Assembly: GCA_002269645.1 (NCBI GenBank)
Contig: NIVC01001532.1
Span: forward strand, 1-64,000
Length of the DNA stretch: 64,000 nt
Direction of reading: 5' to 3'
Source: Macrostomum lignano
Lineage: Eukaryota
Part shown: piece by piece, positions 1 to 64,000 of the stretch
Numbering within the stretch: position 1 is the stretch's first letter
Layout: the number at the start of each line of letters is the position of its first letter
Position numbers and translations under genes: made by a program
Notes under the pieces: model-generated
What the model was told of the DNA's origin: nothing
Database searches by the model: none
Seen by the model: the letters and a program-made list of their open reading frames with translations, nothing else

Positions 1-1990
1 GAGTGGGATTTTGGAAGAAACAGTGGATTTGGGAAAAGAGACTGGGGTTTCGGGAGAGGGAGTAGGATTTTGGACGGAGGTCTGGGAATTTGGAGAAGAA
101 AGAGTGAAAGACAGTGGGATTCAGGGAAAAGAGACAGTGGGATTTAAGGCAGAGGTACTGGGATTCGGAGAAGAGGGAGAGAATATAGGGAAGATTGAGT
201 TGGATTTGGGGAAGAGTGGGTGGGATTTGGAGGTAGAGGGAGTAGGATTCGGGGAAGATTGAGTTGGATTTGGGGAAGAGGGGGTGGGATTAGAGGTAGA
301 GGGAGTGGGATTCGGGGAAGAGGAACTGGGATTTGGAGGAAGAGGGACTGGGATTCGGGGAAGAGGAACTGGGATTTGGAGGAAGAGGGACTGGGATTCG
401 GGGAATAGGGACTGTGATTTGGAGGAAGAGGGAGTGGGATTCGGGGAAGAGGGAGTGGGATTCGGGGAAGAGGGAGTGGGATTCGGGGAATAGGGACTGG
501 GATTTGGAGGAAGAGGGAGTGGGATTCGGGGAAGAGGGATGGGATTCGGGAAGAGGGAGTGGGATTCGGGGAAGATTGAGTTGGATTTGGGGAAGAGGGA
601 GTGGGATTTGGGAAAGAGGAAATCGGATTTGTGGAAGACAGGGAAGAGGGACTGGGATTCGGGGAAGAGGACTGGGATTTGGAGGAAGAGGGACTGGGAT
701 TGGGGAATAGGGACTGGGATTTGGAGGAAGAGGGACTGGGATTCGGGGAATAGGGACTGGGATTTGGAGGAAGAGGGAGTGGGATTTGGAGGAAGAGGGA
801 GTGGGATTTGGAGGAAGAGGGACTGGGATTCGGGGAAGAGGGAGTGGGATTTGGAGGAAGAGGGACTGGGATTCGGGAAGAGGGAGTGGGATTTGGAGGA
901 AGAGGGACTGGGATTCGGGGAAGAGGGAGTGGGATTCGGGGAAGAGGGAGTGGGATTCGGGGAAGAGGGAGTGGGATTCGGGAAGAGGGAGTGGGATTCG
1001 GGGAAGATTGAGTTGGATTTGGGGAAGAGGGAGTGGGATTTGGGAAAGAGGAAATCGGATTTTGGAAGACAGGGAAGAGGGACTGGGATTCGGGGAAGAG
1101 GGACTGGGATTTGGAGGAAGAGGGACTGGGATTCGGGGAATAGGGACTGGGATTTGGAGGAAGAGGGACTGGGATTCGGGAATAGGGACTGGGATTTGGA
1201 GGAAGAGGGAGTGGGATTTGGAGGAAGAGGGAGTGGGATTTGGAGGAAGAGGGACTGGGATTCGGGAAGAGGGAGTGGGATTTGGAGGAAGAGGGACTGG
1301 GATTCGGGAAGAGGGAGTGGGATTTGGAGGAAGAGGGACTGGGATTCGGGGAAGAGGGAGTGGGATTCGGGGAAGAGGGAGTGGGATTCGGGAAGAGGGA
1401 GTGGGATTCGGGAAGAGGGAGTGGGATTCGGGGAAGATTGAGTTGGATTTGGGGAAGAGGGAGTGGGATTTGGGAAAGAGGAAATCGGATTTGTGGAAGA
1501 CAGGGAAGAGGGACTGGGATTCGGGGAAGAGGGACTGGGATTTGGAGGAAGAGGGACTGGGATTCGGGAATAGGGACTGGGATTTGGAGGAAGAGGGACT
1601 GGGATTCGGGGAATAGGGACTGGGATTTGAGGAAGAGGGAGTGGGATTTGGAGGAAGAGGGACTGGGATTCGGGGAAGAGGGAGTGGGATTTGGAGGAAG
1701 AGGGACTGGGATTCGGGGAAGAGGGAGTGGGATTTGGAGGAAGAGGGACTGGGATTCAGGGAAGAGGGAGTGGGATTTGGAGGAAGAGGGACTGGGATTG
1801 GAGAAGAGGGAGTGGGATTTGGAGGAAGAGGGACTGGGATTGGAGAAGAGGGACTGGGAGTTAAGGAAGAGCGACTGGGATTCGCGGGAAGATGGAGTTG
1901 GATTAAGGGAAGAGGGAGTGGGAAGAGAGGATGAGGGACTGGGATTTGGCAAAGTGATTGTGGGATTTGGGAAAGAGGAAATCGGATTTG
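1..1990. repeat. G-rich ~21-nt minisatellite (GGGATT[C/T]GG..GAAGAGGGA[G/C]T) in an RNF123 intron
   Basis: Direct inspection; source of the spurious ORFs at 11-2016. Confidence 0.95.
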
Positions 1991-2126
1991 TGGAAGACAA
2001 ATTAAGATTTCGATAAAATGGGATTTCGAGAAGAGGGACTGGTGTTTAGTCGCAATAAACTGTCAGTTTGTTAAACTTTTGTCTTGGAAACATGAGTTCA
2101 AATAATAGAAAAAAACATGCACAGAC

Positions 2127-2253
2127 AAACATGATGAGAATTGTCTCGTTCGTTTGAACGCTGTCCAATACAGTGCAAAATTTGATTTTTATTTATTAAA
2201 TTTTGCTAACGTCTTGGAATGGCTATTGATATCAAAGCGTATACTCTGATTTG
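2127..2253 (+). ncRNA. Candidate intronic box C/D snoRNA, copy 1 (18S rRNA guide)
   Basis: C box ATGATGA 2131-2137; guide GTCTCGTTCGT 2143-2153 antisense to the universal 18S segment ACGAACGAGAC; D' TTGA 2154-2157; D box CTGA 2246-2249; terminal CAAA/TTTG stem; about 115 nt upstream of the 3' splice site. Confidence 0.72.
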
Positions 2254-2365
2254 GAATTGATTTGTTGTTAAGATATCTCTAATCCATTAATCCAAAAATA
2301 GAGCACTTCATAAACTGTTTAACTGATCACAGTTTTTGTTTATCATTTTTTTCACATCTAAACAG

Positions 2366-5300
2366 CCCTGGCTACCTCACGACGTCATCACTTGCTGCAT
2401 CGACTGCGACGAAGGCGTCGTGTCGTTCTATCGCAACGGACGCAGCCTGGGCGTTGCTTTCGATAATGTTCGTCTGGGTCCCGGCGTCGCGTACTTTCCA
2501 GCTTTGAGCGTAGCTCGAGGCCAGGCAGCGTTTCTGAATTTTGGCGACGTGCCTTTTGCGTAAGTTTCTTGTTGCAAAATGTCTTAGATCTGGTTCTACT
2601 GTTAGTAGGTTTTATCGAGGTTCAGTTTTAGGGTGTTAAACTAACAGAAATCTACGTATCATCTTGCTACTATTATCGGCTACTATGAATATTATAGGTT
2701 GAGTATCGGGTATTTAATTACCAGCGATCTAATCATCTTACTACTAACAGTAGATTAAGTATCGGGTATTTAATTACCAGCAATCTAATCTTCTCACTAC
2801 TAACAGTAGATTGAGTTATCGGGTATTTAATCACCAGAAATCTAATCTTCTTACTACTAACAGTAGTTTGAGTATCGGGTATTTAATTACCAGCAATCTA
2901 ATCATCTTACTACTAACAGTAGATTGAGTTATCGGGTATTTAATCACCAGCAATCTAATCTTCTTACTACTAACAGTAGTTTGAGTATCGGGTATTTAAT
3001 CACCAGCAATCTAATCTTCTTACTACTAACAGTAGTTTGAGTATCGGGTATTTAATTACCAGCAATCTAATCTTCTTACTACTAACAGTAGTTTGAGTAT
3101 CGGGTATTTAATCACCAGCAATCTAATCTTCTTACTACTAACAGTAGTTTGAGTATCGGGTATTTAATCACCAGCAATTTATCATCCTGCTACTAACAGT
3201 AGGTTAGCATAGAGTTTTAACTCTATAAAAACTTTACTATTTTTGTCTACTGCAGCTACCCGATTCCGGAGGATTATCAACCGTTGCAAGCGCCGCCGCT
3301 ACGTTTAGAAACTCGCCTAGTGCCTGTGCTGTCGCATTTAGAGCGGCTGATACCGTTAGCCGCAGACACACGCAACGATGCCTCGGCTGCTACTAAGGTT
3401 ACTGGAGCCAGTTTACAAGAACCTGTTCAACCAGCTGCGCCAATGCACAGCGGCAATACTGGTTCCGCATCAAATGTCGCGTCAGCTGTGTGTTTCGTCT
3501 GTTGCTACCACCGCCTCGTCATCAGCTACTACTAGAAGTAGAGATTCAACTTGCTGGTTGATTGCTTCGCATTTGGTGCCACTTATCGAACAGGGATTGG
3601 TAAGAATTAGTACCAATATTTTCTCTTTTTGTAAAGCTTCTAGATAAAGCTATGAGATCTAGATAAAGCCTCTAGTCTTTTAACCAATCCGCCACTGAGA
3701 GAGTCTCGCCCTACTAATCCGCCCCTGAGAGAATCTCGCCCTACTAATCCGCTCATGAGAGAATCTCGCCTATTAATCCGCTCATGAGAGAATCTCGCCC
3801 TATTAATCCGCTCATGAGAGAATCTCGCCCTACTAATCCGCCCCTGAGAGAATCTCGCCCTATTAATCCGCCCCTGAGAGAATCTCGCCCTACTAATCCA
3901 CTCATGAGAGAATCTCGCCCTACTAATCCGTTCATGAGAGAATCTCGCCCTACTAATCCGCCACTGAGAGAGTCTCGCCCTATTAATCCGCTCATGAGAG
4001 AATCTCGCCCGACTAATCCGCTCATGAGAGAATCTCGCCCTACTAATCCGCCACTGAGAGAGTTTCGCCCTACTAATCCGCTCATGAGAGAATCTCGCCC
4101 TACTAATCCGCCCCTGAGAGAGTCTCGGCCCACTAATCCGCCCTGAGAGAGTCTCGCCCTACTAATCCGCCCCTGAGAGAATCTCGCCCTACTAATCCGC
4201 TCATGAGAGAGTCTCGCCCTACTAATCCGCCCCTGAGAGAGTCTCGCCCTACTAATCCGCCACTGAGAGAATCTCGCCCTATTAATCCGCTCATGAGAGA
4301 ATCTCGCCCTACTAATCTGCTCCTGGGAGAACCACTAATCCGACCCTAATGAACCCCTATGAATCCGATTCATAAAGCCTACATGATGAGAATTGTCTCG
4401 TTCGTTTGAAGCTTTTTCAAATATTCGTAGAGATATTAATTGTCTCTTTGTTTATTCGGATTAGCTGTTGATATCAAGCAATTATCTCTGAATATGTTTA
4501 TGCACATGTTTATTCATTCACTAATATCTGTTTAAGATTTAATTAGAAAAGTACACCGTGTCCTTTTATAATTGCAGACCTGCGACTACACAGTTGCCAA
4601 ATACATTCTACCGTTGATGGCCAAATTTAGCGATATCGATTGCTTGCCGCAGGCTAGGCAATGCCATTTGGAGGTTATTGTGCAGTACATTTGTACTTTT
4701 CTACAGGTAAGCTTTCGTTTTTAACGTAAGCAAAAAAGGCACTGGCTACTATATATTTTTCCTTCTTCCATTAACTATGAGATTCGTCCCTAAGTTAAAT
4801 ACCTTGAGATTCGTCCTCTAGCCACTATCTACTATGAGATTCGTCTCTTAGCTACTATGATATTCGTCTCTTAGCTACTATGATATTCGTCTCTTAGCTA
4901 CTATGATATTCGTCTCTTAACTAATGAGACTAATGAGATTCGTCCTCTAGCCACTATCTACTATGAGATTCGTCTCTTAGCTACTATGATATTCGTCTCT
5001 TAGCTACTATGAGATTCGTCCTTTAGCGACTATGAGATTCGTCCTCTAGCCGCTATGAGATTCGTCCTCTAGCCACTATGAGATTCGTCCTCTAGCCACT
5101 ATGAGATTCGTCCTCTAGCCACTATGAGATTCGTCCTCTAGCCACTATGAGATTCGTCCTCTAGCCACTATGAGATTCGTTATCTAGCCACTATGAGATT
5201 CGTCCTCTAGCCACTATGAGATTCGTCCTCTACTTTCATTAAATAGGGTATATCTGATACCTGACTCCTTTTATTCACAACGGGCAATATTAACTAGTAT

Positions 5301-8300
5301 TATATACCCATATGCTGTTTATTTCCAGCGGGACTCCTGCCAACGCGCCTTAGCCTCCATCGTGTCGGCCCTATTCGCCACCTGTCACAGCCATCCCAGC
5401 CCAGATTACGCTCATCAGCGCACCTGCCTGACCATCCTATTGGCTATGCTCAGACACGATTGCGCTAGGCGTTATTTAGTCTCCTCTGTACTGTTTGATA
5501 CCGTGGAATTGCCAGTGTTCTGCTTTGTTAATCAATTGCCGGAGTTACTGTTCACTAAGGAGCCGCACATTTTTGTAAGTGTATTGGTTAACTTCCTCTC
5601 CTATCCATCCCACTTCAGTCTATTCGCCTCTATAAACTGATGCGCTCTACCACACTTTCCTACTCTACTCTGTCATATTTTGTCTACTCTATCACACCCT
5701 ACCATAGTCTACCCAACTGTACAACACATTACCCCACTCTATCACACGCGACCTCACTCTACCATGCTCTACCCTAGGTCCATGCTTGGGAGCAACCTAG
5801 GGATTCACCCGGCCGTTTCTATTGGAAACACAGACACGTAGGTCGCTACTGGACTGAATAGTAGTCACGTGACTGCTCTCAGCCAATAGCGACTTACATG
5901 TGTTGCCAATAGAAACGGCCGGGTGATTCCCAATGTTGCGCATGTATACCTAGGTCTCTACCACTTACCATGCTCTACCCGAGTCTAACATCTTACCACA
6001 CCTACCCCACTCTACTACACCCTAACCCACTGTATCACACTATATGCCACTCTACCACACCCTACCTTACTCTACCACAGTTTACCATACTCTGTTAATT
6101 ACCCCACTCTCTATCACAGCAAAACACCCCATATACCCCTATTGCCGCGCAGGAGGACTCGAAACGCGAGAAGTACAGCAACAGTCCGCACGCCACCCCA
6201 GCATAGCCTGGCGCCTCGGCCCCTCAGCCCAATCTCGCCTAGCAGACTATCAGGCCAGCATTAGCAAAGTCGACGATCTTATTCAAGAGATGCTGCGCAC
6301 TTTAATGAATCACACAGACGGTACATTGTCTATATTTGCTGATAGACTGCACGAGTTTGTACGCGACAACATGTCACCGGATACTGTCAGTATGCAGCCT
6401 GCTGTACTGCGCGACTGCTGTCCGCAACACGCTATGCCGGCCTTTTTTCACGCTTTGGTGCGAACTATTCAGTCTAAATGGAATGGCACACCAGAGATGG
6501 CTGTTAGTAGTATTATTAAATATTGCTTTTGTATATCCATTTTGATGGTTTTAGATATTGATTTCTAACTGACATCTACTATAGGTCCAAATCTTATTTT
6601 CCACAAAACAAGATTCGAACCCCAGACCTTCATAGAGATTCAAACCCCGACCTTCATCGAGATTCGAACCCCAGACCTTCATAGAGATTCGAACCCCAGA
6701 CCTTCATACAGATTCGAACCCCAGACCTTCATAGAGATTCGAACCCCAACCTTCATAGAGATTCAAACCCCAGACCTTCATAAAGATTCAAACTCCAACC
6801 TTCATAGAGATTCAAACCCCAACCTTCATAGAGATTCAAACCCCAACCTTAATAGAGATTCAAACCCCAACCTTCATAGAGATTCAAACCCCTGACCTTC
6901 AAAGAGATTCGAACCCCTGACCTTCATAAAGATTTGAACCCTGACATTCATAGAGATTTGAACCCCTGACCTTCATAGAGATTCAAACCCCTGACCTTCT
7001 TAGAGATCCGAACCCCTGACCTTCTTAGAGATCCGAACCCCTGACCTTCATAGAGATTCGAACTCCTGACATTCATAGAGATACGAACCCCAGACCTTCA
7101 TAGAGATTCGAACCCCAGACCTGTATAGAGATTACATTCGAACCCCTGAAGACCATAGTGATTCGATCCCATGAACTTAGTAGACCCTGCGAGACCCTCA
7201 TCTTAAATTACTAAACATTCGAACTTCGAACCACTGTTCTTTACCGAGATTCGAACCTTCTCTCTAATCGCAGCCATTCGAGCAGCAGCCCTACATACCA
7301 GCCGAATATTTCTGCCTAGAAGAGTTGGACTCGTACGATGCCCAACGGCTAGGCGGTTTGCAAGCCTACCTGGCCAAAACTTACAAAGACGAAGTGTCTG
7401 CCGTGCTGCGCTCTTCGGCCACCCTGGCTGAGCAGTATCGGCAGCGGGGCGGCTTCGGCGCCGGCCTGAGCTCGCTGGGGGACTCGGCTGCTAGCAGCGG
7501 GAAACGGCGCTTTGTTGGAGGTCTGGGCGCCCTGCTGACCTTCACTGGCCGGGGCGGAAGCGGCGGCGGCCATAAAGAGGGTAGCTCGCCCACGGCTGAG
7601 CAGCAACAGGTGACTTGCGTCTAATCGTTTTTTATCCTCTAGGAGACTTGCCGCACCTTTCCGGATCAACAGTTGCTGGGCCAGCTCCCCAGATAGTCTA
7701 ATGCTGGCCCACCAGCCTCCCAGATTCTTAGTTTCTGGGCCAGCCTCTCAGACCCCCAGTTGCTGGGCCAGCCTCCCAGAGTGTCAGTTGCTGGGCCAGC
7801 CTTCCAAATCCTCAGTTGCTGGGCCAGCCTTCCAAATCCTCAGTTGCTGGACCAGCCTCCCAGAGTGTCAGTTGCTGGGCCAGCCTCTCAGATCCTCAGT
7901 TGCTGGACCAGCCTCCCAGATCCTCAGTTGCTGGACCAGCCTCCCAGAGTGTCAGTTGCTGGGCCAGCCTCTCAGATCCTCAGTTGCTGGACCAGCCTCC
8001 CAGAGTGTCAGTTGCTGGACCAGCCTCTCAGATCCTCAGTTGCTGGACCAGCCTCCCAGAGTGTCAGTTGCTGGGCCAGCCTCTCAGATCCTCAGTTGCT
8101 GGACCAGCCTCCCAGAGTGTCAGTTGCTGGACCAGCCTCCCAGAGTGTCAGTTACTGGGCCAGCCTCCCAGAGTGTCAGTTGCTGGACCAGCCTCCCAGA
8201 GTGTCAGTTGCTGGGCCAGCCTTCCAAATCCTCAGTTGCTGGGCCAGCCTTCCAAATCCTCAGTTGCTGGACCAGCCTCCCAGAGTGTCAGTTGCTGGGC

Positions 8301-9575
8301 CAGCCTCTCAGATCCTCAGTTGCTGGACCAGCCTCCCAGAGTGTCAGTTGCTGGACCAGCCTCCCAGAGTGTCAGTTGCTGGACCAGCCTCCCAGAGTGT
8401 CAGTTGCTGGGCCAGCCTCTCAGATCCTCAGTTGCTGGACCAGCCTCCCAGAGTGTCAGTTGCTGGACCAGCCTCCCAGAGTGTCAGTTGCTGGACCAGC
8501 CTCCCAGAGTGTCAGTTGCTGGGCCAGCCTCTCAGATCCTCAGTTGCTGGACCAGCCTCCCAGAGTGTCAGTTGCTGGGCCAGCCTCCCAGAGTGTCAGT
8601 TGCTGGACCAGCCTCCCAGATCCTCAGTTGCTAGGCCAGCCTCCCAAAGTGTCAGTTGCTGGGCCAGCCTCCCAGATCCTCAGTTGCTGGGCCAGCCTCC
8701 CAGATCCTCAGTTGCTGGGCCAGCCTCCCAGATCCCCAGTTCCTGATCCAGCCTCCCAGATCCCTATCCCAATCAAACTGAAACCGCTGTAGGCCTCGGC
8801 AACTCCGCCTTCGCCATCGACGCCGGCCCATCCGCAGCAGCCGCTTGGACCAGCAATGCTGGCCGAGTTTGGTTGCCGCCACCTGCTGCCACCCTCCTCC
8901 AGTCCTGCCGGCACTTCAGCTGGCTCGTCGCCAACTGCCACATTCCTAGACGAGCGACAGCAGCTGCTGTTGCAGATGCACTCGCTCAGCAGTCAGCACC
9001 ACCGTCGGCATAGTCGCAGACAGCAGCAGCAACAGCAGCAGCAGCAGCAGCAATTGCAGCAGAGTCTAATTCTGCCCCTAATCCGTCTATTGGACTGCAC
9101 TATAGCTTTATTCTATCTGAGCGTCTACCGCCAGCTAGTGCTGGCTAGCAAGCGGCTGCTAGACTATGCGTCTTATTGCGACGCGCTGGACCAGACTAGA
9201 GCTAATCTGGCCCGCTGTCCGCCGGATCGGCTGGCCGACATCGGGCAGCGGATTGAAGCCGCCGAACGGGTGCTGCGCGATCATCTGATTGGTCGAGAGG
9301 CGGCGCTGGCGCATCTGCTAGCCGGACCATTGTCGCCCGAAATGCGCGCCTCTGTTCGTTGGCTGTGCTCGGTGTTATCCGCGACCTTTGCTAAAGCGGC
9401 TGGAGCTGGCGGAGAGGCGGACAATAATAATTTGTTCCGATTCTTGCCCGAGTATTTTGTTTCCACTGCGGCTAATGCGTTCTACACTCTGAAGGATGTG
9501 TGCGGCCTGCTGGTGCCGTTCCAGACCGCTGAGGGTGAGTCTGTCTGTCTGTCTGTCTATCTATCTGTCTGTCAC

Positions 9576-9632
<57 letters not shown>

Positions 9633-12600
9633 GTCTGTCACTGTCTGTCTGTCTGTCTCTCTGTCTGTCTGTCTGTCTGTCTGTGTCTGTCTGTCTGTCT
9701 GTCCTTCTCTCTGTCTGTCTGTCTGTCTGTCTGTCTGTGTCTGTCTGTCTGTGGATCCATCCATCTCTGAAACGAGAAGTAGAACTTGTTTACGATGACT
9801 ATAAGTGTAATTTATGTAATCCTACAGCTAAATTATCATCTTATCTAACTAAGGAATAAAAGTTATCTATCTCAACCGCCTACAGATAGCGCAGAAATCC
9901 TGCTCAGCTTCGCCCGCTTCATCACAGCCTATTTCGACGATCCTCGTATAGTGAGCTCGGAGACTCGCGAACTGTTCCTGTCTAATCTGGTTGTGCTCAC
10001 CTGCGAGCCTGACTTCATCGAGGCGCTACAAAGATTCAGCCAGGATGAAGCGGCTTCCCTAGTAAAGTCTTTGTTGCTACCGGCTTCGTCAGATTCCGGC
10101 TATAGCAGGCGCTGGTTTCTCACTAATCGAGTCCTGGTTCGATTCTGGAAAGGCGACGGGTTCGCGTTTCGGTACGCCGAAGAGCCAGACGACTTGGCTG
10201 ACGCTTCCGGCGAGGCTGGCAGCGCCGGCGGCAGCGGCGGTGGTGGCGACCTGATGAAGCAGCTGGCTGCCAATCGGTTGTTTAATACGACTCCGACTCC
10301 GAAGAGCTTTGATTTAGGTGAGTTTTTGGTTTCTAGTGGGAGCCCAGGGATCCTTCATTTATTTTCTAGATGCTCAAACTGGTCCCAATTCTTCCCATTC
10401 CCAGATCTTCAGCTTGCTCCCATTTATTCCCATTCCGTGATCTTCAAACTGGTCCTAAATTCTTCTCATTGTCTGACCCTCTAACTAGTCTTCTAAACTC
10501 CCGAGACTCATCCTATTCCTAGATTCCTACTGATCCTATTCCCAGATTCCCAGTAGACTGATCCTATTCCCAGATCCCCAAACTGATCCTATTCCCAGAT
10601 TCCCAGTAGACTGATCCTATTCCCAGATCCCCAAACTGATCCTATTCCCAGATCCCCAATTTTATCCTATTCCCAGATTCCCAAACTGATCCTATTCCCA
10701 GATCCCCAATTTTATCCTATTCCCAGATCCCCAAACTGATCCTATTCCCAGATCCCCAAACTGATCCTATTCCCAGATCCTCAAACTGATCCTATTCCCA
10801 GATCCTCAAACTGATCCTATTCCCAGATCCCCAAACTGATCCTATTCCCAGATCCCCAAACTGATCCTATTCCCAGATCCCCAAACTGATCCTATTCCCA
10901 GATCCTCAAACTGATCCTATTCCTAGATTCCCTAGGACTCATCCTATTCCCAGATCCCTAGACTGATCTTATTCCCACATCCCAAATCTGATCCTATTCC
11001 CAGATTCTCGAACTGATCCTATTCCCAGATCCCTAATATGATCCTATTCCCAGTTACCCAAACTGATCCTATTCCCAGACCCCAATTTGATCCTATTCCC
11101 AGATCCCTAATATGATCCTATTCCCAGATCCCCTAACTGATCCTATTCCCAGATTCCCGAACTGATCCTATGTTTAAATCCCTTCACCATTCTAAGATCT
11201 TTAGGTTTGCTAATTTTTCTTTCCACCTCCAAGTTATTAGGTTGAGTCGTTTCTCCCATTGCAGACCCGTATCCTTCGGCATTTTATCAGCGCCAAATCC
11301 GCGCCCTCCTGGTCTCCGACCCGGCATTGCAACGTCAAATTGTCGATTTCCTGCTTAACAAGCTCAATCTGAGCTTCTCAGACTACCTGTCTGTGTCGCA
11401 GGACAGCCGGAATGCCGCCTCAGCCGCCGGAGCCGCCATCAGCAGTCGGCGAGCCAAAGTGCTGTCTGGCTTCCTCGACATGACAGTCGTGCTGGTCCGG
11501 GCGCTCGAGATGGTGGCGCATTTAACGCCTGAGTTCTTTGTGCAACCAACTTCTAGCTTGTTTTTGAGCCGGCTGAGCCAGGTAGCTTACTGGAAGCTTT
11601 CGCTATGTTGCTATGGAAGGTGCAATCTGTGCTGCTATGGGAGATGGGATCTGTGTTTCTGTGGGAACAGAAGATGGGATTCGTGTTGTTATGGGAGATG
11701 GGATCTGTGTTGCCATGGGAGATGGGATCTGTGCTGCTATGGGAGATGGGATCTGTGTTGCCATGGGAGATGGGATCTGTGTTGCCATGGGAGATGGGAT
11801 CTGTGTTGCCATGGAAACGGAATATGGGATATGTGTTGCTATGGGAACGGGAGATGGGCTGTGTTGCTATGGGAACGGGAGATGGGCTGTGTTGCTATGG
11901 GAACGGGAGATGGGCTGTGTTGCTATGGGAACGGGAGATGGGATCTGTGTTGCTACGGGAATGGGGGATGGAATCGCTGTTGCTATGGGAGATGGGAACT
12001 GTGTTGCTATGGTAATGGAAGATGGGATCTGTGTTGCTGTAGGAACGGGAGATGGGATTTGTGTTGCTATGGGAACGGGGGATGGAATCTGTTTTTATGG
12101 TAGATGAAATCTTGTTGCTACGGGAACAGGAGATGGGATCTGTTGCTATGGGAGATTAGAAATTTAGTCTATTACTAAGTTTTCAAGTCCCAAGGTAAAA
12201 TTAGGTGATTGGGGTCTGTTGCTATGGTGTGAGAATGGGATCTGTTGCTAGGCTTTTAGAAAGAAATCGGCTGCTAGATAATGCGGCAAATAAATAAGAG
12301 TTTACTTGATTTGGCAAGTCTCATTCATTCGCACACAACTAAGCAATGGAAATCCCCCCTACACAACCGCAGGTTGCTGGCCAGATCATGCTCCGATTGC
12401 CAAGCATCTGTGGCGCCACTGGCCTGTTCCCCCTGCTAGCGGGCGTCTGCGGCCTTCTCCGCGAGCTCACGGCCGGTTCAGGGTCAGCCTCATCAGCGGC
12501 AACCCGCCGACAGACTGTATTGAGCAGTTTAAAAAGCGAAGCGTGTTTAAATTCGCGCACACTGACTAAAGTGTACGAAGTTTTAGCCGCCTATGCTACT

Positions 12601-12888
12601 AAGGGTGACGAAGAAGGTCTGGTCACCTCAGCGGAGCTGGAATTTGTCAAACAACTCGGCGAAGATCTGGACAGCCTAGTTGAAGACTCAGAGTTGACCG
12701 GCTGCTCAGAGGACGATCTGTGTCCAATCTGCTACGCGCACAAGCTCAGCGTAGTGTTCAAACCGTGCGGCCACCGCTCCTGCGGCTCCTGCATCGCGTT
12801 GCAGCTTAGCAACAAACGAGAATGCTTCTTCTGTAAGGCGGCCGTGAAAAAAGTTGAAGATTTCTCTGGCAATCAGATTAAAATGTAG
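2366..12888 (+). CDS. RNF123: E3 ubiquitin ligase RNF123/KPC1 orthologue, 5'-incomplete. Exons: 2366-2559, 3256-3397, 3435-3599 (split by a putative 37-nt intron or a frameshift), 4578-4706, 5329-5574, ~6153/6179-6502, 7274-7609, 8793-9534, 9886-10317, 11265-11581, 12373-12888
   Basis: C-terminal half of the SPRY domain ([27 protein letters not shown]...YFPALS...NFG), conserved RNF123 blocks ([37 protein letters not shown]) and a terminal C3HC4 RING (CPICYAH...[10 protein letters not shown]...CFFC). GT-AG junction phases were checked by hand and are consistent except at two flagged points. Confidence 0.93.
2690..3205. repeat. ~57-nt minisatellite, ~9 copies, each containing TACTAAC
   Basis: Unit GAGTATCGGGTATTTAAT[T/C]ACCAGCAATCTAATCTTCTTACTACTAACAGTAGTTT. 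Confidence 0.95.
3690..4330. repeat. 30-nt minisatellite, ~21 copies
   Basis: Unit GAGAGAATCTCGCCCTACTAATCCGCTCAT. Confidence 0.95.
4380..4495 (+). ncRNA. Candidate intronic box C/D snoRNA, copy 2 (paralogue of copy 1)
   Basis: 30 nt identical to copy 1 (ACATGATGAGAATTGTCTCGTTCGTTTGAA, 4381-4410); conserved C'-like GCT[A/G]TTGATATCAA; D box CTGA 4488-4491; 86 nt upstream of the 3' splice site; intervening sequence diverged. Confidence 0.7.
4780..5235. repeat. 22-23-nt minisatellite
   Basis: Unit CTATGAGATTCGTCCTCTAGCCA. Confidence 0.93.
5781..5948. mobile_element. MITE-like foldback element with possible 8-bp TSD (CCTAGGTC)
   Basis: Arms 5800-5848 and 5887-5931 are near-perfect reverse complements; CCTAGGTC at 5773-5780 and 5949-5956. 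Confidence 0.6.
6610..7145. repeat. 24-25-nt minisatellite carrying B-box motifs on the minus strand
   Basis: Unit GAGATTCGAACCCCAGACCTTCATA. Confidence 0.93.
7700..8760. repeat. 28-nt minisatellite, ~38 copies
   Basis: Unit CAGTTGCTGG[A/G]CCAGCCTCCCAGA(GTGT/TCCT). Confidence 0.95.
9539..9755. repeat. (TCTG)n microsatellite directly after a splice donor
   Basis: Direct inspection. Confidence 0.95.
10510..11170. repeat. 25-nt minisatellite
   Basis: Unit ACTGATCCTATTCCCAGATCCCCAA. Confidence 0.93.
11600..12250. repeat. 24/28-nt minisatellite containing X-box-like motifs
   Basis: Units GGGAGATGGGATCTGTGTTGC[C/T]AT and GTTGCTATGGGAACGGGAGATGGGCTGT. Confidence 0.92.
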
Positions 12889-13107
12889 ATTGATTGAGTT
12901 GGCTTTTGTAAGTGTCTGATATCGATTTTTTGACTCTTGTTGACTGCCTCTTTTGATTGTATTTTATAATAGCTTGTACAAGGGCTGATTGTTGGGATAG
13001 TGGCTCTGAGGCGACTGTTGAGTCACGTCAGTTGTAAAATCTTTCATCCAGAAGTCGTGTTGACGCTTAACTTCCAACTAACTCAAGTAATCATGACGTA
13101 TAATAAT

Positions 13108-61864: not shown

Positions 61865-63202
61865 ATGCTTGCGTCTAAATCAGGCATTATAATTACCTTC
61901 TTCCTCGTTATTCTAGCGGCTCAAAGTATGATGGTCACGCCAACAACAACTACGGGTGGTACTACAGTCGAAGAGGAGCTGTTCCAGACAATCGACGAGA
62001 CAGAACCGATCACGGTGACATTCTCGCAGACTGACGTAGTTATCGAAGTTGGAGAACAGGCCCATCTATTCTTCCAATTATCTGGCCAATTCAGCAACTC
62101 AACCAAGGACGACTATCTGTACTTCACCTATCAGGTGGAGGCCGGCGAAGCGATCACCAGCAAGCAGCGAGTGCCAGTGATTGGCGATCTGGCTCGCGTC
62201 TGGCTTCCATCGACCAACGAAACCTATCACGCCATGCCATTCGTGATAGTCGGCCTGACGCCAGGTCACCTGATCATCGGTCTGAACTGCACCAATCCCG
62301 AGTTCGAGAATCGTCCCGACCGATTCGTTCGAATCCAAGTTATTCGCAGTCGATGGATCAACGTTATAAACTTCACTGTCGGTCTGTTGTACGTCTTCTG
62401 CTGGTCGGCGTCCTACTACCCGCAGACTTGGCTGAACTACACCAGAAAGTCTGTGGTCGGTTTAAATTTCGACTTTGTCGGCTTCAACATCATGGGCTTT
62501 ATTGTCTACAGCATCTTCAATGTCGGCCTGTACTGGGTGCCGCCATTGCAGGTGATGTATCACCAGCAGCATCCCCGAGGCGTCATCCCAGTGCAGCTGG
62601 CTGACTGCATCTTCGCCTTGCACTGCTTCGGCATCACCATATTCCAGGGCATTCAATGCTTTATTTATGAACGCGGCGGACAGAAACTCTCCATAATTGG
62701 CAGTCTGTTACTAGGCGGTATGGCGTCATTCCTATTAATCTGTCTGATACTAACCGCCGCCTGTGGAGCTACCTGCGGTCTCACCTGGCTACAGTTTATC
62801 TATTTTGCGTCCTACCTAAAACTCTTGATTACACTGGTTAAATACGTGCCGCAGGCTTATATGAACTACAGTCGAAAGTCCACCTGGGGTTGGTCCATTG
62901 GCCAGGTTTACCTGGATTTTTCTGGCGGCTTTCTCAGCATTGCCCAGATGCTTTTGCTGGCATATAACTATAATGACTGGGACTCGCTGCTAGGCGACCC
63001 AACCAAACTCGGTCTCGGCATTGTCTCCATTTTCTATAACATTCTGTTCTTCATGCAGCACTACTGCTTTTATGGGCCAAGCACTGGAGGCATTATAGTC
63101 ATCGATGGCGGCAGCGTGACCCACTCGGATGCCCGTGTCAACAGCAACAGCAACGCCTACCAAATGGAAAAATCCACCGACGAGAAGACAAGACTGCTGT
63201 GA
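61865..63202 (+). CDS. CTNS: Cystinosin (lysosomal cystine/H+ symporter, PQ-loop family), single exon, 445 aa
   Basis: Signal-like N-terminus, luminal domain with N-glycosylation sequons, two PQ loops (SYYPQTWLNYTRKSVVGLNFDF; KYVPQAYMNYSRKSTWGWSIG), GDPTKLGLG; AATAAA at ~63286. Confidence 0.93.
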   Translation: MLASKSGIIITFFLVILAAQSMMVTPTTTTGGTTVEEELFQTIDETEPITVTFSQTDVVIEVGEQAHLFFQLSGQFSNSTKDDYLYFTYQVEAGEAITSKQRVPVIGDLARVWLPSTNETYHAMPFVIVGLTPGHLIIGLNCTNPEFENRPDRFVRIQVIRSRWINVINFTVGLLYVFCWSASYYPQTWLNYTRKSVVGLNFDFVGFNIMGFIVYSIFNVGLYWVPPLQVMYHQQHPRGVIPVQLADCIFALHCFGITIFQGIQCFIYERGGQKLSIIGSLLLGGMASFLLICLILTAACGATCGLTWLQFIYFASYLKLLITLVKYVPQAYMNYSRKSTWGWSIGQVYLDFSGGFLSIAQMLLLAYNYNDWDSLLGDPTKLGLGIVSIFYNILFFMQHYCFYGPSTGGIIVIDGGSVTHSDARVNSNSNAYQMEKSTDEKTRLL

Positions 63203-63394
63203 GGGAAAAATAGCAGACCGACTAGTTTCTAACTTTGTTTCCCCGTCATCTTTTGGAGCATTTTTATACTGTTATTGAGAGAGCAATAAACCCGTAGTAA
63301 AAGGCCGTATAGTAGTAGAAATAGTATAGAAGAAAAGAAATGACTAGTTTTCACAAACCTTAACCGCTAGCATCCTCGACTCCATTCAATCCTT

Positions 63395-63660
63395 CATTGG
63401 CTACAGAGAGTTCACCATTCCATCGCGTACTCTCTACCCCTTCTCGCTCGTTCATTGGCTACAGAGAGTTCACCATTCCATCGCGTACTCTCTATCCCTT
63501 CTTGCTCGTTCATTGGCTACAGAGAGTTCACCATTCCATCGCGTACTCTCTACCCCTTCTCGCTCATTCATTGGCTACAGAGAGTTCACCATTCCATCGC
63601 GTACTCTCTATCCCTTCTTGCTCGTTCATTGGCTACAGAGAGTTCATCATTCCATCCATC
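63395..63660. repeat. 58-nt tandem repeat, ~4.5 copies, downstream of CTNS
   Basis: Unit CATTGGCTACAGAGAGTTCACCATTCCATCGCGTACTCTCTA[C/T]CCCTTCT...GCTCGTT. Confidence 0.93.
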
Positions 63661-64000
63661 TTACACTCTCCACTTCAGCTCTCTCTCTGATTGGCTAAAA
63701 AGACTCGATCAGTTTTTTTTCTCAAATATTTCTGTCCTTACTTGCTCGCTGATTAGCTATTGAAATTTGACCGTTTCTAAACTCGAAAATAATATTTTTA
63801 CTGCTTAGAAGAAAACAAAAAAATATTTCGCAGTCTATCAAATTTCATTATTAAAAAAGCATCAATAAAGATGATATTCTACTTTTTTGTTAGTTCGGTT
63901 CGTTTAGAAACCAAAATATATAGTATTTTTTGTTATATTTTTGTCCCAAATTGGCTGGAAATTGTGTTTTACCGTTTTTGTTTACTTGCAAAGAAGATAC

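Follow-up and report, generated by a model that had tools for sequence, protein, structure and literature searches.

The stretch of DNA analysed here, referred to as the window, comprises 64,000 nt from the flatworm Macrostomum lignano (assembly GCA_002269645.1, contig NIVC01001532.1, positions 1 to 64,000) and carries on its + strand an orthologue of RNF123, two introns of which each harbour a candidate box C/D small nucleolar RNA (snoRNA). The exons and introns of the host gene were mapped with a 1378-aa RNF123 protein model, P0130. When the exon concatenate of window positions 2366-12885 was used as a query, it matched M. lignano proteins at 96-97% identity and contained SPRY, TPR_RNF123 and RING domains. 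Its best named match was an "E3 ubiquitin-protein ligase RNF123-like" from the nemertean Tubulanus (E 4e-108), in keeping with the host identity given in an initial annotation of this DNA; the SPRY exon alone, used as a protein query, returned no match. Copy 1 of the element lies in intron 4, ahead of exon 5, the 5' part of this intron falling outside the window, and copy 2 lies in intron 6, between exons 6 and 7 (Table 1). Both copies are oriented in the sense of the host, and intron 5, which lies between them, contains no such element. Most of each host intron is taken up by one minisatellite, and the copy occupies the short unique sequence that separates this minisatellite from the 3' splice site. 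From the end of box D to the start of the next exon, the distance is 116 nt in copy 1 and 86 nt in copy 2; the position near the 3' splice site described earlier thus stands, with its range of 86-115 nt slightly amended.

Both copies contain, on the + strand, the same 30-nt block ACATGATGAGAATTGTCTCGTTCGTTTGAA (2129-2158 and 4381-4410), as had been noted for two RNF123 introns in the initial annotation, and the order of their parts is identical: box C, a 5-nt spacer (GAAUU), the antisense element GUCUCGUUCGU, box D', an internal hairpin, box C', a 12-nt spacer and box D. Boxes C (AUGAUGA) and D (CUGA) are canonical in each copy. The spacing from C to D' is the same in both, as is that from C' to D, and the two paralogues share the same D' (UUGA) and C' (UGAUAUC), which are brought together by the hairpin. 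Measured from terminal stem to terminal stem, copy 1 spans about 128 nt, whereas the mature RNA of copy 2 probably covers positions 4378-4496 or thereabouts, roughly 118 nt. The terminal stem of copy 1 consists of 4 bp (2126-2129 with 2250-2253), and the same four pairs are marked when copy 1 is aligned to the model of the plant snoRNA family snoZ43.

The internal hairpins are unrelated in sequence between the copies, yet both are far more stable than their shuffled counterparts (z -5.7 and -5.3; 200 shuffles). Each closes immediately beside the internal boxes, 2 nt after D' in copy 1 and 1 nt after it in copy 2, and 3 nt before C' in both; in the predicted folds, this placement is what bringing the distant D' and C' together requires. 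In the predicted fold of the free RNA, box C (GAUGAGA) also pairs with the 5' part of the antisense element (UCUCGUU) across a 4-nt AUUG loop, forming seven pairs including a G-U pair, at window positions 2133-2150 and 4385-4402. Such pairing might place an extra constraint on the fully conserved 5-nt spacer, or it might be irrelevant once Snu13 binds.

Table 1. Coordinates of the host exons, of the two candidate snoRNAs and their parts, and of two candidate snoRNAs from metagenome contigs. Positions refer to the window, except in the last two rows, where they refer to the respective metagenome contig.
Feature	Position	Strand	Remarks
RNF123 exon 5 (SPRY domain)	2366..2559	+	3' splice site 116 nt past copy 1 box D
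RNF123 exon 6	3256..3599	+	separates both host introns
RNF123 exon 7	4578..4706	+	3' splice site 86 nt past copy 2 box D
Candidate snoRNA copy 1, intron 4	2126..2253	+	~128 nt, terminal stem to terminal stem; sequence reading, strict C/D scanner
Copy 1 terminal stem, 5' half CAAA	2126..2129	+	pairs with UUUG 2250-2253; C2130 unpaired
Copy 1 box C, AUGAUGA	2131..2137	+	
Copy 1 antisense element GUCUCGUUCGU	2143..2153	+	12 Watson-Crick pairs to 18S AACGAACGAGAC with U2154
Copy 1 box D', UUGA	2154..2157	+	
Copy 1 internal hairpin, 23 bp	2160..2223	+	-21.0 kcal/mol, z -5.69, 0/200 shuffles as stable
Copy 1 box C', UGAUAUC	2227..2233	+	sequence, paralogue alignment
Copy 1 D-side spacer AAAGCGUAUACU, possible second guide	2234..2245	+	5/12 identical to copy 2
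Copy 1 box D, CUGA	2246..2249	+	
Candidate snoRNA copy 2 including external stem, intron 6	4371..4502	+	
Copy 2 box C, AUGAUGA	4383..4389	+	
Copy 2 antisense element GUCUCGUUCGU	4395..4405	+	
Copy 2 box D', UUGA	4406..4409	+	
Copy 2 internal hairpin	4411..4465	+	-17.5 kcal/mol, z -5.25, 0/200 shuffles as stable
Copy 2 box C', UGAUAUC	4469..4475	+	
Copy 2 D-side spacer AAGCAAUUAUCU, possible second guide	4476..4487	+	sequence, paralogue alignment
Copy 2 box D, CUGA	4488..4491	+	
Metagenome candidate C/D snoRNA L019	6582-6635		54 nt, 7-bp terminal stem
Metagenome candidate C/D snoRNA L064	match 1357-1383	-	

Comparison of the two introns revealed a mosaic of conserved and divergent segments. From 2 nt before box C through 1 nt past D', all 30 positions are identical, the block surrounding C', GCUNUUGAUAUCAA, is identical at 13 of its 14 positions, and CUCUGA at box D is identical throughout. 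In contrast, the internal 52-62 nt are near chance, the D-side spacer agrees at 5 of 12 positions, and the 40-nt flanks fall to the level expected by chance for AT-rich sequence (10/40 upstream and 15/40 downstream). Similarity between the introns hence extends from 2 nt before box C to box D, and the paralogue alignment agrees with the earlier claim that conservation is limited to the boxes and the 5' guide. The best local alignment of the unique intron parts reached a score of 61, compared with 20.7 +/- 2.8 and a maximum of 35 in 500 shuffles. The 12-mer GTCTCGTTCGTT occurs exactly twice in the 64 kb, both strands counted together, where 0.10 occurrences would be expected from shuffles. On the + (sense) strand of window positions 1-12888, which hold 12.9 kb of RNF123, RTGATGA heptamers occur only as the C boxes of the two copies. 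When the 64-kb window was searched with a strict C/D scanner demanding exact boxes and a terminal stem no shorter than 4 bp, copy 1 was the sole match, and copy 2 failed. Because shuffled sequence yields about one match per window, boxes and stem alone prove nothing; the significance of the two elements comes from the pattern of conservation between paralogues together with complementarity to ribosomal RNA (rRNA) and position. A neutral duplicate would not produce such mosaic conservation.

Together with the first U of D', GUCUCGUUCGU is perfectly complementary to the 18S rRNA segment AACGAACGAGAC, over 11 nt, or 12 nt when this U is counted. The second A of ACGAAC, the nucleotide selected by the D'+5 rule in the initial annotation, lies opposite the fifth nucleotide upstream of D' (U2149 in copy 1 and U4401 in copy 2) and pairs with it; with D' read as UUGA, the register agrees. 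The segment AACGAACGAGAC is contained in the 18S primer GAGTCTCGTTCGTTATCGGA, which has been used in 29 papers on rat, fish, insects, crustaceans, nemerteans, kinorhynchs and nematodes. Use of the primer across these animals indicates that the target segment is conserved across Metazoa, and the 18S rRNA of M. lignano itself presumably carries exactly this target sequence. An origin of the match as an antisense fragment of ribosomal DNA was rejected, as the 18S match is exactly 12 nt long, with mismatches on both sides.

In published tables of human 18S rRNA, Am1383 is listed under SNORD30 and Cm1391 under SNORD28, in agreement with the target, human A1383, and the guide, SNORD30, that had been named in the initial annotation. 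The nucleotide predicted as the target corresponds to human 18S Am1383, where methylation is known and conserved. When A1383 of the human 18S sequence is set on the target A, positions 1391, 1442 and 1447 fall on a C, a U and a G, respectively, each of them a known methylated residue, and the register is consistent with this. Judged by complementarity and register only, the flatworm RNAs would share with SNORD30 the guiding of Am1383.

Taken as a whole, the two elements are most likely paralogous intron-encoded box C/D snoRNAs that guide methylation of the 18S A equivalent to human A1383. We infer that both are expressed, assembled into ribonucleoproteins (RNPs) and active in methylation. In the mechanism proposed, the RNF123 pre-mRNA would contain both elements; once splicing has removed their introns, debranching and exonucleolytic trimming would free them, while binding of the core proteins Snu13, Nop56, Nop58 and fibrillarin to the C/D and C'/D' motifs would protect them. 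The element GUCUCGUUCGU(U) would then pair with AACGAACGAGAC of the 18S rRNA, placing the target A opposite the fifth nucleotide upstream of D', and fibrillarin would 2'-O-methylate the second A of ACGAAC. By joining D' and C', the long internal hairpin would allow the internal kink-loop (K-loop) to form. The two copies would stem from an old local duplication within the host gene, followed by divergence everywhere except at functional positions.

Members of the RNF123 cluster led to two more M. lignano loci, L002 (NIVC01001531.1) and L003 (NIVC01003217.1), in which both copies occupy the same intron positions. The copies in L002 are identical to those of the window. Those in L003 differ by a small number of substitutions and by a loop deletion of 2 nt, and none of these changes touches box C, the guide, D', C' or D; within the D-side spacers, there is one substitution in copy 1 and a G-to-A change in copy 2. 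As a host, RNF123 had been proposed for the lineage; the sequence evidence for this comes from M. lignano only, where three haplotype or homeologue versions of the locus carry the candidate snoRNAs. Neither in intron 5 of the window nor in the remaining RNF123 introns of L002-L004 did a further canonical C/D candidate turn up. Across about 165 kb of M. lignano DNA (the window plus loci L001-L004), the motif was found only at the two orthologous intron positions.

Relationships to known snoRNA families were sought with the Rfam models. At gathering thresholds, none, whether SNORD30 or other C/D families, matched the window or loci L001-L004, although the initial annotation had called the elements SNORD30-like. 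This label is apt for the target and fails for the family, since the SNORD30 model (RF00088) gave no match even at E <= 10, in searches with 2.5 kb and with 143 nt. Human SNORD30 (U30, encoded in an intron of SNHG1) resembles the flatworm RNAs in being intron-encoded and in being assigned to 18S A1383, the nucleotide predicted here. It differs in lacking any detectable sequence-family relationship to them and in having a non-coding host, SNHG1, rather than the protein-coding RNF123. The classical target of SNORD30 is 28S A3804, and human A1383 was the last orphan site of rRNA 2'-O-methylation until chimeras obtained by crosslinking and immunoprecipitation (CLIP) assigned it to SNORD30 in 2016. 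Compared with SNORD30, the flatworm RNAs have a plain guide of 11-12 bp, are longer (~118-128 nt) and contain a large internal hairpin.

Plant snoZ43 (RF00330) is a C/D snoRNA about 100 nt long that resembles the flatworm RNAs in its guide, as the 5' antisense element (consensus GGUCUCGUUCGU) holds the identical GUCUCGUUCGU; an internal stem is present as well, and an AUAUCA block precedes the 3' guide. Scored with the snoZ43 model, the window copy reaches 14.8 bits, where the gathering score is 43 and true plant members score 56-115 bits. The snoZ43 guide lies 12 nt after box C (5 nt in the flatworm) and is followed by CGUA, not NUGA; its 3' guide (CCACCCAUAUU) is another one, and its genes lie in plant polycistronic clusters, not in introns of protein-coding genes. 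A literature search on Z43 targets and on RNF123 as a snoRNA host found nothing relevant. Afu_190, SNORD42, SNORD18 and microRNA (miRNA) models were also rejected as families, their weak scores reflecting boxes or an AU-rich hairpin only.

Metagenome contigs were scanned with the pattern TGATGA-N(2-12)-GTCTCGTTCGT. Chance matches in GC-rich bacterial coding sequence made up most of the output and were excluded; the others comprised plant snoZ43 genes and compact C/D snoRNAs on unrelated AT-rich, eukaryote-like contigs. In the latter, GUCUCGUUCGU is directly followed by CUGA (loci L019, L064, L103 and L040), AUGA (L088 and L007) or UUGA (L028). These sequences share with the flatworm RNAs a box C, a spacer of 5-11 nt, GUCUCGUUCGU and NUGA, with UUGA itself recurring in L028 and the 5-nt spacer in L019, but they measure only 54-75 nt, lack the long internal hairpin and have unrelated 3' guides. 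None of the seven matched an Rfam family, and together they may form an uncurated, widespread family of guides for the Am1383-equivalent site. Recurrence in metagenomes and plants identifies the guide-plus-D' register as a recurrent, independently observed arrangement. On present sequence comparisons, the flatworm RNAs are best described as predicted functional analogues of the Am1383 guide, not as members of the SNORD30 or Z43 families.

Several observations weigh against two functional snoRNAs with the target proposed. Beyond the failure of every Rfam model to reach its gathering threshold, the best sub-threshold scores are low, at 20 bits for Afu_190 (boxes only) and 14.8 bits for snoZ43, where the cut-off is 43. 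The internal boxes D' (UUGA) and C' (UGAUAUC) are degenerate. In addition, copy 2 has no terminal stem beside its boxes, only a 6-bp external stem (4371-4376 with 4497-4502), and divergence among the three M. lignano loci is just 2-4%, so that these loci demonstrate presence and have no power to detect selection; owing to this low divergence of L002 and L003, a test for purifying selection comparing boxes with flanks is underpowered. With regard to the degenerate boxes, position 6 of box C pairs with position 1 of box D in the kink-turn (K-turn) of C/D RNAs, canonically as a G-C pair, and UGAUAU of C' with UUGA of D' would retain this pair as A-U.

That only copy 1 yields a stable, functional snoRNA, copy 2 being a decaying paralogue that is not stably processed, appears unlikely, and it is the one alternative against which the mosaic conservation does not argue. 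Its basis is the failure of copy 2 in the strict scanner for want of a terminal stem next to C and D, given that terminal stems aid the assembly of intronic C/D snoRNPs. Copy 2 nevertheless retains perfect C and D boxes together with the guide, D', C' and the spacing of 12 nt; it has an independently evolved strong hairpin (z -5.25) in addition to its 6-bp external stem, and its distance of 86 nt from the 3' splice site is the more typical one. In a decaying copy, 30/30 identity would not persist amid divergence elsewhere.

The sequence upstream of box D has diverged between the copies and probably lacks a conserved target; the D-side element would be unconstrained or lineage-specific. There is a slim chance that the paralogues, though sharing the 18S guide, are non-redundant, the D-side elements AAAGCGUAUACU and AAGCAAUUAUCU having different lineage-specific targets in rRNA, small nuclear RNA or mRNA, and/or the unusually long hairpins giving rise to snoRNA-derived small RNAs.

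An origin of the shared blocks as snoRNA pseudogenes, or as functionless remnants of segmental duplication or gene conversion within the introns, with the 18S complementarity inherited and unused, is improbable. Such an origin would suit the lack of an Rfam match at threshold and the appearance of boxes plus stem by chance about once per 64 kb, but not the exact coincidence of the mosaic conservation with the functional parts of a C/D RNA, nor the retention of hairpin structure despite unrelated sequence. Moreover, the guide register falls on a nucleotide known to be methylated, and both introns retain the placement close to the 3' splice site.

Still less can be said for the 30-mer as part of a dispersed repeat or mobile element with an incidental ATGATGA and an rRNA-like 12-mer. 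The M. lignano genome and the host introns are indeed very repeat-rich, yet the motif is confined to two orthologous intron positions in the sequence surveyed, homology stops exactly at boxes C and D, no terminal repeats or target-site duplications were seen in the flanks, and the rRNA match is exactly guide-sized, extending into the 18S on neither side; this account is very improbable. Finally, a functional product consisting of the internal hairpin, as a precursor of an miRNA-like or other small RNA with the boxes incidental, is barely credible: the hairpins, about 55-64 nt long, are very stable and give weak, structure-only matches to several miRNA models, but these reach 11-15 bits against cut-offs of 54-97, the stems are AU-rich and bulged, and it is the boxes and guide that are conserved between the copies, not the hairpin sequences. 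Paralogous snoRNAs directed at the Am1383-equivalent nucleotide remain the best explanation of the two elements.

The host gene and the remainder of the window show several further features. Long minisatellites dominate introns of the window (positions 113-1997, 2695-3202, 3686-4331 and 4831-5232, with many others besides). Their units measure 21, 56, 30 and 23 nt and are present in up to 88 copies, and the minisatellites give rise to long spurious open reading frames on both strands. In exon 6, the reading frame is shifted at window positions 3488-3542 relative to P0130, L002 and L003. The exon is one continuous 345-nt frame in the latter two loci, and residues 324-341 are not recovered from the window exon, which fits a 1-nt indel; the shift reflects either an assembly error or a disabled copy.

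The window is also a mosaic with respect to the other M. lignano loci. Tiles covering positions 1-4000 are 98.7-99.9% identical to L002 (NIVC01001531.1) and 84-96% identical to L003 (NIVC01003217.1), whereas those covering 5001-13000 are mostly 99-100% identical to L003, and those covering 62001-64000 are 100% identical to L001, which lies on the same contig as L003. A recombinant haplotype or a chimeric join of homeologues may, among other options, account for this pattern. Near the end of the window, positions 61865-63202 hold an intronless gene for a 445-aa cystinosin (PQ-loop), with an exact match in NIVC01003217.1; its best named match is another M. lignano protein (53%), and its best non-self match is an unnamed Logan protein (58%). 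Window positions ~17300-59000 were compared with L002 24360-31596. In L002, the cystinosin gene lies 7 kb downstream of RNF123, compared with a gap of about 49 kb in the window, in which several genes are found, among them a CRAL-TRIO/MSP gene and a DEAH-helicase-like gene. L002 lacks an equivalent for about 41 kb of the window, and the homeologous loci thus show a large presence/absence difference.

Hardly any flatworm snoRNAs have been annotated, and the two copies represent an ordinary kind of gene that has escaped annotation. A survey of Schistosoma by homology recovered U3 but no unambiguous homologue of another known snoRNA (PMC2770079); failure of homology searches is therefore to be expected in flatworms. 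A literature search found no paper on snoRNA annotation in Macrostomum. The present analysis would supply M. lignano, a model for regeneration and stem-cell research, with a confident, target-assigned C/D snoRNA candidate, and predicts a specific 18S methylation that can be tested by RiboMeth-seq. RNF123 would be added to the protein-coding hosts of snoRNAs. The general understanding of snoRNAs is left unchanged by either copy. A flatworm, plants and several uncharacterised eukaryotes all have a plain, canonical predicted guide for the Am1383-equivalent site. If the two copies do prove to be non-redundant, they would represent sub- or neofunctionalisation of duplicated snoRNAs within one protein-coding host.

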